From Anaeramoeba ignava BMAN (lineage: Eukaryota > Protista > Anaeramoebae), in assembly GCA_028826165.1 (NCBI GenBank), contig JAPDFW010000140.1, positions 57,138 to 121,137 on the forward strand: a stretch of 64,000 bases of DNA, read 5' to 3'. Positions 38,944 through 46,664 of the stretch are shown here, one piece after another. Numbering within the stretch: the stretch's first letter is position 1; each line of letters begins with the position of its first letter. Made by a program: the position numbers and the translations under genes. The notes under the pieces were generated by a model. The model worked only from the letters and a program-made list of their open reading frames with translations. It did no database searches and was not told where the DNA came from.

Positions 38944-41900
38944 TTATATTTTATAATGAGAAAATCTATATTCTGGTTTTTGATAAAGTTCAATTTGCCA
39001 AGTTAAAGTAGATTCTTCATTTAATTGAAAATAATCTTGAACATATTTCAATTCATCAAGAACAAAAAAAGGTAAATCTAATTCTAAAGAATCAAAATAA
39101 AAAAATCGAATTAAACTCTGAATTGTTTGTTGTGTTTTCCCACTATAATCATGAACTGAATTTGATTTATCATTTACACTTGAAAACATTCCATTAAATA
39201 ATCCACTTCTTGCAGCCAAAACTATTTTATCAACCTTAATTGAAACATTATCCACAATTAAAGTAAAATCTTTTGAATCTTCATTATAATATAATTTTTC
39301 CAAATCCTTTAAAAATCCTTTTCGCCATTTTTTCTCTTCAATCCATTTATCATCAAATCCAATTTCTTTTGCCATTTCAAAGATTATTTTCTGGTACTTT
39401 TTTTTCAAATCTTTATTGATTTTTTTGATTAATTGATATTGATCATATTCATCTTTTTCACTTGAATTTTCAAGTGTTTTCAAATAATCTTTTGTTCCAT
39501 CATAAAATATTCCAGTATAAAGAAATCTCAAAAATAAACAAACATCTTCTGATTTATAATTTGAAAACATTTCTAAAAGATCATTTAGTTTTTCTTTTCC
39601 AATTCTCATTTTAATAATTTCTTGATGAGCTTCAAGTTTTCCATCAATTGTTTTTATTATTAAATTTGTTAAAGACTTTGTTTTATAAAGATTCCAAAAA
39701 TCTTCTGTAATTGAATTCCAAGATTTAATAATTTTATTTGAAATCAATCCTGATTTTATTGACAATCTAATTGTTTTTAACTTTTTTTTTTTTAAAAGAA
39801 AATTATTGGAAATTATAAATCTATTGATTAATAAAATTAATAAAAAAATATAAACTTGATTCTCTCGACTATATTCTGTTCCATAATCAAATAATAATTT
39901 AAGACATGGTTTTGTTCGACTAGAAAAAGCTGAATCTACAGGTTTTATATACTAATTAAAAAATAATATATTAAAAATGATTTTTGAAAAAAATTTTAAA
40001 TGAATTCACTTCCTAAATTAAAATTAAAATTAAAATTAAAATTAAAATTAAAATTAAAATTAAAATTAAAATTAAAATTAAAATTAAAATTAAAATTAAA
40101 ATTAAAATTAAAATTAAAATTAAAATTAAAATTAAAATTAAAAATTAAAATTAAAATTAAAATTAAAATTAAAATTAAAATTAAAATTAAAATTAAAATT
40201 AAAAATTAAAATTAAAATTAAAATTAAAATTTATATTCTGTTAATATTGTATTAATATTAAAATTAAAATTAAAATTAAAATTAAAATTAAAATTAAAAT
40301 TAAAATTAAAATTAAAATTAAAATTAAAATTAAAATTAAAATTAAAATTAAAATTAAAATTAAAATTAAAATTAAAATTTAAAATTAAAATTAAAATTAA
40401 AATTAAAATTAAAATTAAAATTAAAATTAAAATTAAAATTTATATTCTGTTAATATTGTATTAATATTATACATGTTTCTCATTTGGATTTGCTCCAAGT
40501 TTTAAAAGAAGTGTTAACAATTTTGGATTGCTTTTTTCACAAGCAATAGAAAGACAACTATTACTCTATAACAAATAAATAATCAAAATAAACTTCTTTC
40601 TTAAATTCTTTTAGTAAATAAAAAATAATAATTTACATGCTTTTCACGACTAAAAAAAAGAATAAAAATAAAAATAAAAATAAAAATGAAAATAAAAATA
40701 AAAATAAAAATAAAAATAAAAATAATTTATTCACTTTGCTTTAATACTTGCTCCACTTTTAATAAGAAATTCAATCACTTCATAATCAGGTAAATTTCTT
40801 GAACAAGCTAATTTAATTGCTGTTCTTCCCTGTATTTTTTTTTTCAAAGAGGAACAGAAATAAAAATTTTATCATTTCTAATTTAAATATTTTTTTTCCT
40901 TTAAATTTTACATACTAAATTATAAATAGAATAAAATATGAATAAAATTAACAAATATATAAAATAATTTACATTCTATTAATATTATTTATATTAATAT
41001 TATTTATATTAATATTATTTATATTAATATTATTTATATTAATATTATTTATATTAATATTATTTATATTAATATTATTTATATTAATATTATTTATATT
41101 AATAGTTTTAAATTCAAACATCTTCAGTAAATGGAACTTTTTTTTCAACTAATAATTTAATTGTATTAAGAGAAGCTCCCCAAAAAGCTGCTAAATGAAG
41201 ATAATTTTGTAACTTTTTATATAAATATAAAATATAAAATTAAAATATAAAATATAAATATAAAATTAAAATATAAATATAAAATTAAAATTAAAATATA
41301 TAAAATTAAAATTAAAATTAAAATTTATAATTAGATTAAAAATAATTTCCAAACTAAAAAAAAAGAAGATTATTTTTGTATTTAAAAAAATTTCCTATTT
41401 TTGTCTTTTTCATTCTTAAATTTACCATAAAATTTTTCATAAACATTTGCTCCATTTTGAACTAAAAAATTAACAAATTCGAATTCATCTTTCTTTTTTA
41501 TAGCATAATAAAGTGCTTTTTTTTGCTATTATTTAATAAATTTTTTTTAAATAAAAAATCAATATTAAATTCTATAATTTAAATTTACAAACTAAATTAA
41601 TATTAAATTAAATTAATATTAAATTAAATAAATAATTAAAATTTTTAATTTACTTCCTAAAAATTTATTTACATTTTGTTTTTGAATAAATAAAATAATC
41701 ATTTCTTTTTCTTTTTTTTAAATAAATTTTTTTTACATCAACTGAATTAACTGAAAAACCCATATCAAGTAAGAATTGAAAAAATTCAATATTTTGAGAT
41801 GTTTTTGAAGCAATAACAAAATAACTTTGACAGTTCTAAATTAATTATTATAAGAATAATTCGATATAAAAAAAGAATTTTAAATTAACTTTTTTTTTTA

Positions 41901-44900
41901 TAAAATACTTCAATACTATCTTGCAATTTAGCTCCATTTACTTGAAGTAATTTTGCAATTTCTATATTTTGTAAATATTTAATAACATAATCAAGTGGAC
42001 GAATATATTCATCTTTAAATTCATTTTTCTGATCAATAAATTGAAAATTATTAATTAAATGAATTTCTAAAAAAAAATATTATTATTGTTTCATTTATTA
42101 CAAAATAAATATTTGGATCTGCATAATAATTTAGTAATATCCTTAAATATTTTTCAGGATTTTTCGATTTAGTAGCAATCCCAATAGGCAATTTTCCATG
42201 CTTTAATTTTTAATTTATATAAATTTATAAATACAATTTCAAAATGGAAATTAAATTACAAAATATTCTTTTAAAAAATAATAAAATGATTTAATTTACT
42301 TTCTAAAACGAAAAAAATCAAAAATAAAAATTAATCATTTCTTTCTTTTTATATTAAATTATTAATTATTTTACAGATTTAATATTTGGATTTGCATGTG
42401 ATTCAAGTAATAACTTAATAATTTCTGGTTCATTTTCTGCAAATAATGCAAGATGTAATGGAGTTTCAAACTAATAATTTTAAATTAAGAAAAATTATTT
42501 TAAATCAAATTAATTTTTTTTTAAAAAAAATTATTTACATCCTATATTTTTTTATCAATTAAAAAAAATCTCTTTCTTTTTAATTAATTTATTAATTTAA
42601 ATAAAATTACGTTCTTTAAATTAAATTAAATTAAATTAAATTAAATTAAATTAAATTAAATTAGATTATATAAAATAAAATCAAACATTTTTTCCATCAA
42701 TATAAGCTCCATTATTAAGTAATAATTGAATAACATTTTTATCATGATTATATTTACATGCATAATGTAATGGTGTATCAAAATTCTAAAACAAATTTAA
42801 AATTTTAAATTTCAAATTTCAAATTTCAAATTGCAAATTAAATTTTACTTTCTAATTTAAATTAATTTAAATTAAATTAAAATAATTTAAAATAATTTCT
42901 CTTAATTTGAAATGCTTTTTTTTATTAAAAATCAATTAATACATTAGAATATTTAATTTTTGAACCTGAAGAAATTAATAATTTAACAATTTCAATAGAA
43001 TTTTCTTCAATTTGTAAAGCAAAATGTAAAGGAGAATTTCCCTAAAAATATATCAAAGAATATTTAAATATTTCTTTCTTTTAAATTATAGAGAAAAAAA
43101 AATATTTACATTCTAATATAGAATTATATATATTTTTTTTTTAAAAAAAATGTTTCATAAAAAGAAAAAGATCAAAATTTACACTTTTATTTAGAAAAAA
43201 TAAAATGAATTTTTTCTTTGGATAGATTAAAAAAAAATTTAGTTATAATTTTAATTACGAATCACAAATATTTACATCTGCTCCATTGTTAATTAAAAAT
43301 TCAATAATAGAATAAGTTGGTTTTTTTGATTGAAAAATTTTTATTAATGGAGTTTCTTCCTATAATTTAATTAAATTATAAAAAATAGGAATGGAATTAT
43401 TTTTAAATTTTTAAAATGAATTTTTCTTTACATTCTAAATAACAGAAAAAAAATTTTTTTAAAAAAAGAAAATGATTAATTTTAGATCAAAAAAATTTTA
43501 TTACAATCTATTAAATTATTTTTTAGTTTTAGTTTTATTTATTTTATTTTTTAATTAATGAATACATTTTTTGCATTAATTTCTGTTTTTGCAGTTATTA
43601 ATTCTTTGATATATTGTTCTGAAAAAATATCACAGGCAATATGAAGAGAATTTTCTTTCTATTTTATTTATAAAAAGCATATTAAAAAAATAAACAAACT
43701 TTATTCAAAATAAAAAATTACCATCTAAAATTATATTTAAGTATTTTTAATTAGAAAAAAAAATTATTTAAATAAAATACATACTATTTTTAAAAATAAA
43801 AATAAATAAATTTAATTTTAAAATTCAGATTAAATTATCAATAAATTTTTTTTTAATAAAAACATTAGAAAGATTAGGATTTGCATTTTTTTGTAAGAAA
43901 AGCTTAAAAATTTGAATATCATTTTTATGTGAAATGAAATCTTGAAATGGAGTAATTCCCTATTATTAATAATAATAATACTAAATAAATAATCAAAAAA
44001 AAAAAAAAAAACTTTCAAAATAAAAATTACATTCTAAATAAAGAATAGATATTAAAACAATTATTCAAACTTAAAATGAAAAGGTAATTAATTTTTTTTA
44101 CATTCTAAATTAATATATATATAAATATCCTAATTTTGTTGTTTTAATTTTTAAAATAAAACAAACATCTTGAAAATTTGGATCAGTTCCTAAATTAATT
44201 AATTTTTCAATTATATTTAAATCTACATTATAACTACATGCTAAATGTAATGGTGTTTTTTTCTAATAATAAAAAAGATTTATGATTATTAAATTAAATT
44301 ATAATATTAAAAAAAAAATTTAAAATTTACGCACTTTTTTTTTGGAAAATGGATTATAAACAAAATAACTTTTTTTTTATTCAAAATGAGTAAAAGAAAA
44401 AATATTAACATTCTAAATAATTATTAAATTTTTATATCATCTTAAATTATTTTTTAAAAAAAAAATATGCAAATCTACATTAAATTTATCAATATTTGCT
44501 CCATGAGAAATCAACTTTTCAAAAATTTCTAATGAATAACCGTAATAAATTAAAAAATGAAGTGGAGTATCTCCCTAAATAATAATAATAATAAAACTAA
44601 TTAAAATTAAAATTTAAAATTCTTTTTATTTTTTTTTACATCCTAAATCCAAAAAAAATATTAATAACATTATTAAAAGAATAAATTATATTGGAAATAA
44701 ATTTACATTCTAATTTAAATTTAAACTTATAAACATAATAAATGAAATTGTTTTTTTATTACATTTTGTATATTGATATCAATATCACTTTCAATTAAAA
44801 CTTCAATAATATCAATTTGAGCATTAATTTTAATTGAGAAATGTAGATAACTATCTCCAAAATTCTAATTAACAAAAACATAAATAAATTTCATTCGAAA

Positions 44901-46664
44901 TAAATATTATTTAAATCTAATAATTACTAAAATATGATTCATATTAACTCCTGATTCAATGAATGTTTTAATTAAAAGAGGATTTCCATATTTAATTGCA
45001 GTTTCAAGTAAAGTAACTTGCTAAAAATTGAGAATAAATAAAAATATAATAATATATAATATAAATCAAAATTACAAGCTAAAAAGAAAACATAAGAAAA
45101 TTAAAATGGTTTTTTTTTTGGAAATGAAATCAATACAGAATCATTTCTTTTCCATATATTTTCAGTTTTTTTAATTAAAAAACGAATAATTTCAAGATCA
45201 AAATTTTCTTGAATTGCGATATGAAATGGAGAAATGCACTTTTTATTTTTTTTAAAAAAAATAAAATATAAAAAATTTACATTTCTAATTTATAGTTTTT
45301 TTTTTTTACTTCAGGCTAAAAAAAAGGAATAATTAAAAAAATGAGAAATTTAAACATATTTTCTTTTAATTGAAAAAAAAAGAAAATAAACAGTTTGAAA
45401 CTAAATTACAAAATAATTTTTAATTTTAATTTTTAATTTCAAATTTTAAATTTTAATTTTACATTTGAAATTAAAAAATCAGCTTTAAATTCAGAAACAA
45501 TTTCAAGAATTTCTAATTTAGGTTTATTTTTAAAAAGAATATGTAAAGGAGTATCTCCCTAAAATGAAAAATATAATGATATTTAATACTAAAAAAATAA
45601 AATGGAAAATTTTTTTTAAACGAAAATGATTTACATCCTTTTAAATTAAAAAAATAATATTTTAATTTCCAATTTTGGAAAATAAATCTTTTTTGTTTTA
45701 CAATCTTTTCAAAAAATAAAATTCAAATAAAATTTAAATAAATTATAATAAATCTAAATATTTTTTTTACATTAACTGAATCCAATTTAGCTCCATTTTT
45801 TAAAAGTAGTTTTATAATTTGAAGATTTGTTTCTTTTTGGAAAACAATATGAAGAGCAGTTAATTTTGACTGATAAATAGAAATGAAAAATTATTTTGAT
45901 TAAAAAGTAAATTTTCTAAAAGGAAAAAAAAGAAGAGATTCTTTTTAGATAATTTTACAAACTAAAAATAATTAAAAAGAATAAATCTAAATTAAATAAA
46001 AAGAAAAAAAAATGATTTACTTTCTAAAAATGAAAGGAAATTAAAAATAAAGTTTGAATTTGCATTTAAAATTTAAAACTTAAAATAAAAAACTACTTCA
46101 AATTCATTTGGATTTGAACCTAAATCAATAAGTGTTTGAATAAATTCAATTTTAGGATTTTTTTGTAAAGAAATTTGCAAAGGTGTAAATCCCTAATAAT
46201 TATAATTAAATATAAATAATAAATTTACAAAATGGAAAATTGTTTGTTTTTTTTTTTAAATTTACATTCTTTTTGATTATTTTTATTTAAAATGAAAATT
46301 TAAATAAATAATTTCTTTTTTCAAACAAAACAAACTAATTTAAAATTATTTACAATCTATTTAAAATAGAAAAAATAAAATTTATATAAATTTAAAATGA
46401 TTAAATCTTAAAAACAAATGAATAAAATTCTTTTATAACTTTTTGGTTAATATTTTTATTGTCTAAAAGATGTTTTAAAGTTTCAATATCATTTTCTGAT
46501 ATAATTTTTTCAAAAATTTCCTAATTAAAAAAAATTTTAATTTTAAATTTTAAATTTTAATTTGAAAATTATTTTAATACAATATCAATTAAATTTGAAT
46601 CATCTTCACTTAAATCAGAAGTATCATCTGAATCACATAAACCAAAACTTTGAAAGAAAGACAT
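38944..46664 (-). CDS. Ankyrin-repeat (about 22 repeats) plus C-terminal BTB/POZ protein, about 1090 aa, about 57 exons including about 32 microexons
   Basis: ATG at 46664. Long exons: 46664-46581, 46520-46440, 46192-46097, 45869-45771, 45558-45463, 45238-45137, 45020-44928, 44864-44763, 44574-44479, 44262-44167, 43959-43864, 43658-43566, 43359-43259, 43041-42943, 42785-42687, 42470-42375, 42200-42102, 42028-41909, 41835-41737, 41525-41426, 41212-41120, 40829-40735, 40565-40473, 39951-39856, 39780-38944. Internal exons read GxTPLH...LL..GA..N. The last exon carries KDFTLIVDNVSIKVDKIVLAARSGLFNGMF (BTB). Confidence 0.9.
40010..46356 (-). other. Array of AG-flanked, GT-flanked microexons (27 of 3 nt; one each of 1, 6, 9 and 13 nt)
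   Basis: 3-nt exons (lowest coordinate, codon): 46354 ATT, 46266 AAT, 46021 AAA, 45959 TTT, 45702 ATT, 45635 GAT, 45076 CTT, 44707 AAT, 44640 GAT, 44410 AAT, 44331 TGC, 44102 AAT, 44031 AAT, 43781 TAT, 43722 ATG, 43505 ATT, 43432 AAT, 43110 AAT, 42849 AAA, 42611 AAC, 42539 GAT, 42300 AAA, 41654 GAA, 41589 TTT, 40973 AAT, 40912 TAT, 40010 GAA. Others: 43183 (1 nt), 45310-45315, 45392-45400, 40637-40649. Confidence 0.85.

Follow-up and report, generated by a model that had tools for sequence, protein, structure and literature searches.

Can an exon of the metamonad Anaeramoeba ignava consist of a single nucleotide? This question is raised by an Ank-BTB gene of A. ignava BMAN, in which one base, the T at position 43183, would have to be spliced in between two introns of ordinary length if the reading frame of the gene is to continue along the usual splice sites. 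The window analysed here is the final 64 kb of a 121,137-bp contig, has an average G+C content of about 17% and belongs to an assembly of 42.8 Mb in 147 contigs.

The gene lies on the minus strand at 38947-46500. We modelled 40 exons between 46500 and 42102, the downstream part of the gene following the deposited protein KAJ5066572.1. The modelled exons comprise ankyrin exons of 93-102 nt, one exon of 6 nt, 22 checked exons of 3 nt (46356-42300) and the candidate T, and joined together they form one open frame. About 39 of the 40 exons are in phase 0, the off-phase ones being T and the ankyrin exon directly before it, here called A11. KAJ5066572.1 gives Pfam matches to Ank_2 (1.8e-62) and BTB (8.7e-11), and the gene encodes ankyrin repeats (Pfam PF00023 / PF12796) with a period of 33-34 residues. 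The start of the deposited protein corresponds to a 3-nt ATG exon at 43724, and ten ankyrin exons further upstream (46500-43864), which are held in frame by microexons, lie outside of it.

The pattern AG-NNN-GTAA[AG], with room for exactly one codon between acceptor and donor, occurs 23 times on the strand of the gene and twice on the opposite strand, and other spacings occur 0-9 times. The introns are short (about 70 nt) and consist of about 90% A+T. Leaving aside the two introns next to T, the other 37 are 53-99 nt long (median 68 nt), plus one of 147 nt, and the published mode for the introns of the A. ignava genome is 76 nt. No consistent branch-point motif was found in the 39 introns of the gene. 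The only long intron (45316-45462, minus strand) directly precedes the 6-nt exon CCTGAA (45310-45315, minus strand, Pro-Glu), which stands where two 3-nt exons would be expected. Long microsatellites with the open frames (LI)n, (NF)n and (NIN)n are found in introns or spacers at 39999-40450 and 40970-41100 (minus strand). Near 45283 (45280-45290, minus strand), inside an intron of 71 nt, the string AG/AAAT/GTAAAT was considered as a 4-nt exon and rejected, since it would leave an intron of 26 nt and a broken frame. This site is a decoy; motif matches by themselves are not exons. A full-text literature search, including the two Anaeramoeba genome papers and their supplements, returned no mention of microexons in A. 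ignava.

The region around T was rechecked against the A. ignava BMAN sequence. All coordinates, strings and intron sizes (75, 70 and 68 nt) that had been given for it in a first, sequence-only reading hold on the minus strand. The features are as follows, with slashes marking exon borders.

43259-43359, minus strand: ankyrin exon A11, 101 nt, preceded by ATTATAG, starting in phase 0 and ending ...TGT GAT TC/GTAATT in phase 2, so that the TC of a split codon stands at its end.
43270-43275, minus strand: internal GTAAAT of A11, a rival donor (score 9.9) that encodes the Val-Asn of GADVN.
43184-43258, minus strand: intron of 75 nt, GTAATT...AAAAG, donor score 4.5, acceptor score 6.6.
43183, minus strand: candidate one-nucleotide exon T, AAATAAAAG/T/GTAAAT; TC and T give Ser.
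43113-43182, minus strand: intron of 70 nt, GTAAAT...ATTAG, donor score 7.7, acceptor score 6.6.
43110-43112, minus strand: 3-nt exon AAT (Asn), ATATTAG/AAT/GTAAAT; it belongs to the 23 AG-NNN-GTAA[AG] sites counted on the strand of the gene.
43042-43109, minus strand: intron of 68 nt.
42943-43041, minus strand: ankyrin exon A12, 99 nt, phase 0, starting TTTTTAG/GGA AAT TCT CCT TTA CAT at 43041 and encoding GNSPLHFALQ...; Pfam Ank score 25.8 bits.

The T at 43183 is directly adjoined by a canonical 3' AG and a canonical 5' GT (AAAAG/T/GTAAAT), and the combined length of A11 and T is again a multiple of three. When the exons are joined through T in silico, the frame stays open and reads ...INNGADVNICD-S-N-GNSPLHFALQ.... 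The predicted mRNA would contain TGTGATTC, then T, AAT and GGAAATTC, and its product GADVNICD-S-N-GNSPLH would form a normal ankyrin beta-hairpin loop. We lean towards the view that T genuinely serves as a one-nucleotide exon in a gene that is expressed.

The sequence-only reading had regarded T as required for the frame and its skipping as a frameshift for the rest of the protein. This applies as long as the GTAATT donor at 43258 is used. However, an enumeration of all GT/GC-AG paths from A11 to A12 yielded 12 canonical in-frame routes, some of which start at the internal donor at 43275 and avoid T, and skipping of the whole A11 also keeps the frame. The route through T is the only one that gives a repeat of normal length together with a loop of eight residues. 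The resulting repeat unit is 105 nt long, compared to 93-108 nt for the other units of the gene and 84-87 nt for the rival routes. Eight residues separate GA from the next G-x-[ST]PLH, exactly as in the intronless ankyrin arrays of the same genome, which have a period of 102 nt (34 codons). The 33 codons of A11 match positions 14-32 of Pfam Ank PF00023 (18.9 bits, E 0.0018), just below the cut-off for a single repeat, and when A11 is cut at the internal donor (28 codons), no Pfam match is found at E<=10. This loss is a weaker argument than it looks, since the GTAAAT itself supplies the Val-Asn. Such hexamers are also present in other exons. Of 70 further ankyrin exons that were sampled, 4 have an in-frame internal GTAAAT or GTAAAA, where splicing from it would delete much of the repeat, and ankyrin exons do not avoid GTA ahead of AAT or AAA (4 of 23, compared to 3 of 31 elsewhere). 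An exonic consensus hexamer is therefore tolerated, which we count against use of the internal donor, although an internal GTAAAT in itself is neither forbidden nor informative. Taken as a whole, the sequence-only interpretation is partly supported. The reading in which T is spliced in is the best-supported one, and it is the only one that keeps a full ankyrin repeat. We infer that RNA of this gene is spliced along this route.

Are the splice sites of T of normal quality, and could they have arisen by chance? Position weight matrices were trained on the other 37 introns of the gene (leave-one-out medians 7.0 for donors and 6.0 for acceptors). The donor (7.7) and the acceptor (6.6) that flank T are within the range of these introns, and the GTAATT donor of A11 (4.5) is above their 10th percentile (2.9). 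GTAATT donors and AAAAG acceptors are seen repeatedly elsewhere in the gene, and the introns on both sides of T have normal lengths (75 and 70 nt, compared to the median of 68 nt and the mode of 76 nt). We then shuffled the 146 nt between A11 and the AAT exon 20,000 times with preservation of dinucleotides. An exon of 1, 4 or 7 nt that rescues the frame with lenient site scores appeared in 0.8% of the shuffles, a 1-nt rescuer in 0.3% and one matching the observed strength in 0.015%. The sequence, the frames and the site strengths at T are as described, and the site is not a product of chance. Since the shuffles yield it so rarely, it is either used or the relic of a former microexon, but not noise.

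The same genome offers a precedent for exons with lengths not divisible by three. In the S10 serine carboxypeptidases of A. ignava, the exon with the catalytic histidine ends two bases into a codon (phase-2 donor), and it is followed by a 4-nt exon (ACCT or TCCT; NCCT) and then by an exon starting in phase 0. Three genes that lie in tandem on one contig show this arrangement, as do two paralogs with 47-52% identity on other contigs (C108:59775-69039; C95:64388-67873; C60:1185969-1189451), and in all these loci the 4-nt exon is needed for the motif GH-x-x-P-x-[DN]Q. The joined products GHLS-P-MDQP, GHLL-P-MNQP and GHFV-P-DDQA match the homologues from A. flamelloides, Naegleria and animals in motif and spacing. 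The deposited proteins end at AGHLS, AGHLSPVIL, AGHLL or AGHLCPVI, or leave the frame after GHFV, and since they end near the catalytic histidine, the conserved C-terminus is missing from them. A. ignava very probably splices exons that are not multiples of three, as these conserved motifs indicate. The S10 genes resemble the locus of T in having a phase-2 donor, a tiny exon that is no multiple of three, a phase-0 acceptor and deposited models that fail at this point. In contrast to T, however, their exon has 4 nt, is anchored by an invariant motif and is kept in paralogs. T had initially been put forward as the best internal evidence that the microexons are really spliced. This does not stand, as both the S10 exon, which is the stronger evidence because it is kept in paralogs of 47-52% identity, and the 102-nt period that the gene has in common with the intronless arrays carry more weight.

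A search of the whole genome for AG-N-GTAAA followed by a 3-nt exon gave 63 sites (62 besides the candidate), and hence no enrichment over the reversed-pattern control with its 184 sites. Inspection of all non-AGA sites, and of the AGA sites in the retrieved loci, did not reveal a second 1-nt exon. Each inspected site is either the end of a long exon or a normal 3-nt AGN exon that has an upstream AG of its own, and among the sites covered T is therefore a singleton. The corresponding pattern for 2-nt exons is swamped by long exons ending in ...AGAT/GTAAA. Three-nucleotide AGN exons (Ser/Arg) with their own preceding AG, such as AG/AGT/GTAAAT and AG/AGA/GTAAAT, are frequent, and the arrays at C1:409-413 kb and C137:620-622 kb have near-identical introns between differing 3-nt exons. 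The locus of T is unique in the 42.8-Mb assembly, where no close paralog or ortholog was found, and conservation of T was accordingly not observed. The best paralog (C119) has the ordinary layout GAT/gt...ag/AAT/gt...ag/AAA/gt. It has AAATAAAAG and GTAAATT around AAT in common with the present locus; an origin of T from such an AAT was considered on these grounds but set aside as evidence, since the alignment of the introns is too A+T-rich to be reliable. The databases hold no transcript-derived protein close to residues 1-170 of KAJ5066572.1, whose 90% cluster has one member, and searches of metagenome contigs with exon-only patterns for the A11 end and the A12 start gave no match.

The strongest alternative is that the internal donor GAT/GTAAAT (43275) is used, and that GTAATT and AG/T/GTAAAT are decayed relics of an older standard layout. 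The RNA would then be joined from ...GCAGAT either to AAT (intron of 163 nt, GAD-N-GNSPLH) or to GGAAATTC (intron of 234 nt, GAD-GNSPLH). Both products are in frame, and the internal donor, 17 nt upstream of the GTAATT donor, has the highest donor score of the region (9.9). This alternative is also in line with the failure to find a second 1-nt exon among the inspected sites, and a damaged AGT relic is plausible because AGT microexons are common. However, introns of 163 or 234 nt would exceed all 37 others of the gene (maximum 147 nt) and bypass two well-formed acceptors, and only 28-29 codons of the repeat would remain, so that the Pfam Ank match would be lost and the loop would have one or two residues instead of eight. 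The acceptor nearest to the internal donor (92 nt) is that of T itself, and splicing to it and onward to AAT and A12 leads to an immediate stop. In addition, two lesions would have to compensate each other in frame without damage to any of the four splice sites. The deposited protein KAJ5066572.1 (698 aa) does take the internal donor and the 234-nt route (...INNGAD/GNSPLH, with a truncated repeat), but none of the microexons is included in it, and the S10 models break off at the 4-nt exon or directly behind it. These omissions mean that KAJ5066572.1 reflects the limits of the gene predictor and not RNA. Use of the internal donor is, in our opinion, unlikely, though it deserves to be taken seriously.

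It is less likely still, and in our view rather improbable, that A11 is a damaged cassette, which is either skipped (from AAT at 43432 to AAT at 43112 or to A12) or included with a frameshift, so that the gene or this isoform is dead. Skipping would be in frame because all neighbouring exons are of the 0-0 type, but the introns would have to span 319-390 nt. The ankyrin match of A11 is poorer than that of the exons around it (17.6 bits with the gene's own profile, 18.9 bits with Pfam), and other ankyrin arrays in the genome carry frameshifts. On the other hand, A11 retains its ankyrin match, an intact acceptor and donor and 33 open codons, while about 640 codons downstream, through the BTB domain, and 30 exons upstream are intact as well. 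A well-formed 1-nt exon that compensates the lesion at just the usual microexon spacing would also be a coincidence. Lesions are rare among the ankyrin exons of microexon-type genes: in a sample of about 71, no exon other than A11 is off-phase.

An assembly error, either the lack of one base where A11 ends (correct sequence GAT TCN/GTAATT with an intron of 146 nt before AAT) or two small indels, is very improbable, though worth considering: the assembly was made from Nanopore R9 reads (Racon, Nanopolish, two rounds of Pilon), homopolymer-type frameshifts are visible in tandem intronless ankyrin arrays and an intron of 147 nt exists in the gene, but short-read polishing should work at this locus since it is unique in the assembly, neither site has a homopolymer, 39 other exons of the gene and 70 sampled elsewhere are in frame, and with a single error AG/T/GTAAAT would still have to arise by chance at a distance of 75 and 70 nt (0.3% or less). 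The frameshifted intronless arrays (C137:388957-393361 and C88:199500-200800) are interrupted by an extra homopolymer A, a duplication of 8 nt and a small insertion. Either these arrays are decaying, or Nanopore errors persist in repeats that lie beyond the reach of short-read polishing.

If T is indeed a one-nucleotide exon, how might it be spliced? The short A+T-rich introns are presumably recognized one intron at a time. The acceptor AG of the upstream intron would fall within the stretch of the downstream donor that is paired by U1, so that both introns could not be engaged simultaneously and their removal would be sequential. With the upstream intron removed first, the junction would read GAT TCT/GTAAAT and look like an ordinary exon end. 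With the downstream intron removed first, a 4-nt exon TAAT would remain.

With regard to its origin, it had been proposed that a 3-nt exon shrank by a 2-nt slide of an intron border. In such a scenario an ancestral ...AAAAG/AGT/GTAAAT might have lost one AG, with the TC added at the end of A11 as compensation; AGT and TC+T both encode Ser. However, a one-step intron gain would fit as well. The 75-nt intron might have arisen 1 nt ahead of a donor that already existed. Its removal leaves GAT TCT/GTAAAT followed by one microexon, and hence a single gain would suffice; an exon end followed by one microexon is the layout of other junctions of this gene. Recent intron gain has already been proposed for A. 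ignava.

One-nucleotide exons have been validated at the RNA level in plants, namely in APC11 and VPS55 (Guo & Liu 2015, PMC4674806; Yu et al. 2022, PMC8831610). Like the T of A. ignava, they consist of a single base between a canonical AG and a canonical GT. The base is needed for the frame, and since annotation missed it, shortened or altered proteins were predicted; the same would apply to T if the GTAATT donor is used. The plant exons, however, are backed by RT-PCR, reporter constructs, RNA-seq and conservation across land plants, whereas T is a candidate predicted from genomic sequence and has no conserved counterpart. The repeat gene that contains it is lineage-specific, and its surroundings are 3-nt exons and introns of about 70 nt with about 90% A+T. 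T would probably extend this kind of exon, RNA-validated in plants, to a metamonad and to an array of single-codon exons.

Recursive splice sites (AG/GTAAGT) act as zero-length exons in the long introns of Drosophila and vertebrates. As proposed for T, acceptor and donor overlap in these sites, the reactions are sequential and a donor is rebuilt after the first step. They differ in that no base is kept in the mRNA and the introns are very long, whereas at T one base would remain and the introns are short. A 1-bp exon is also known from the mitochondrial cox1 of placozoans (PMC5436844). It consists of one base like T, but it is organellar and flanked by introns of the self-splicing type, and it does not depend on the nuclear spliceosome.

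Whether a metamonad harbors the first constitutive one-nucleotide exon outside plants, recently made within an array of single-codon exons, is a question on which we consider the chances to be evenly balanced. If confirmed by RNA, T would represent the lower limit of exon size in an organism only distantly related to plants, amid dozens of 3-nt exons per gene. It would imply that the so far undescribed microexon arrays of A. ignava are really expressed and that the deposited gene models are systematically wrong at such sites. It would also provide a natural test of how short A+T-rich introns are recognized in the absence of any exon to define them, and it would mean that the spliceosome of A. 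ignava takes exons of any length, down to a single base.
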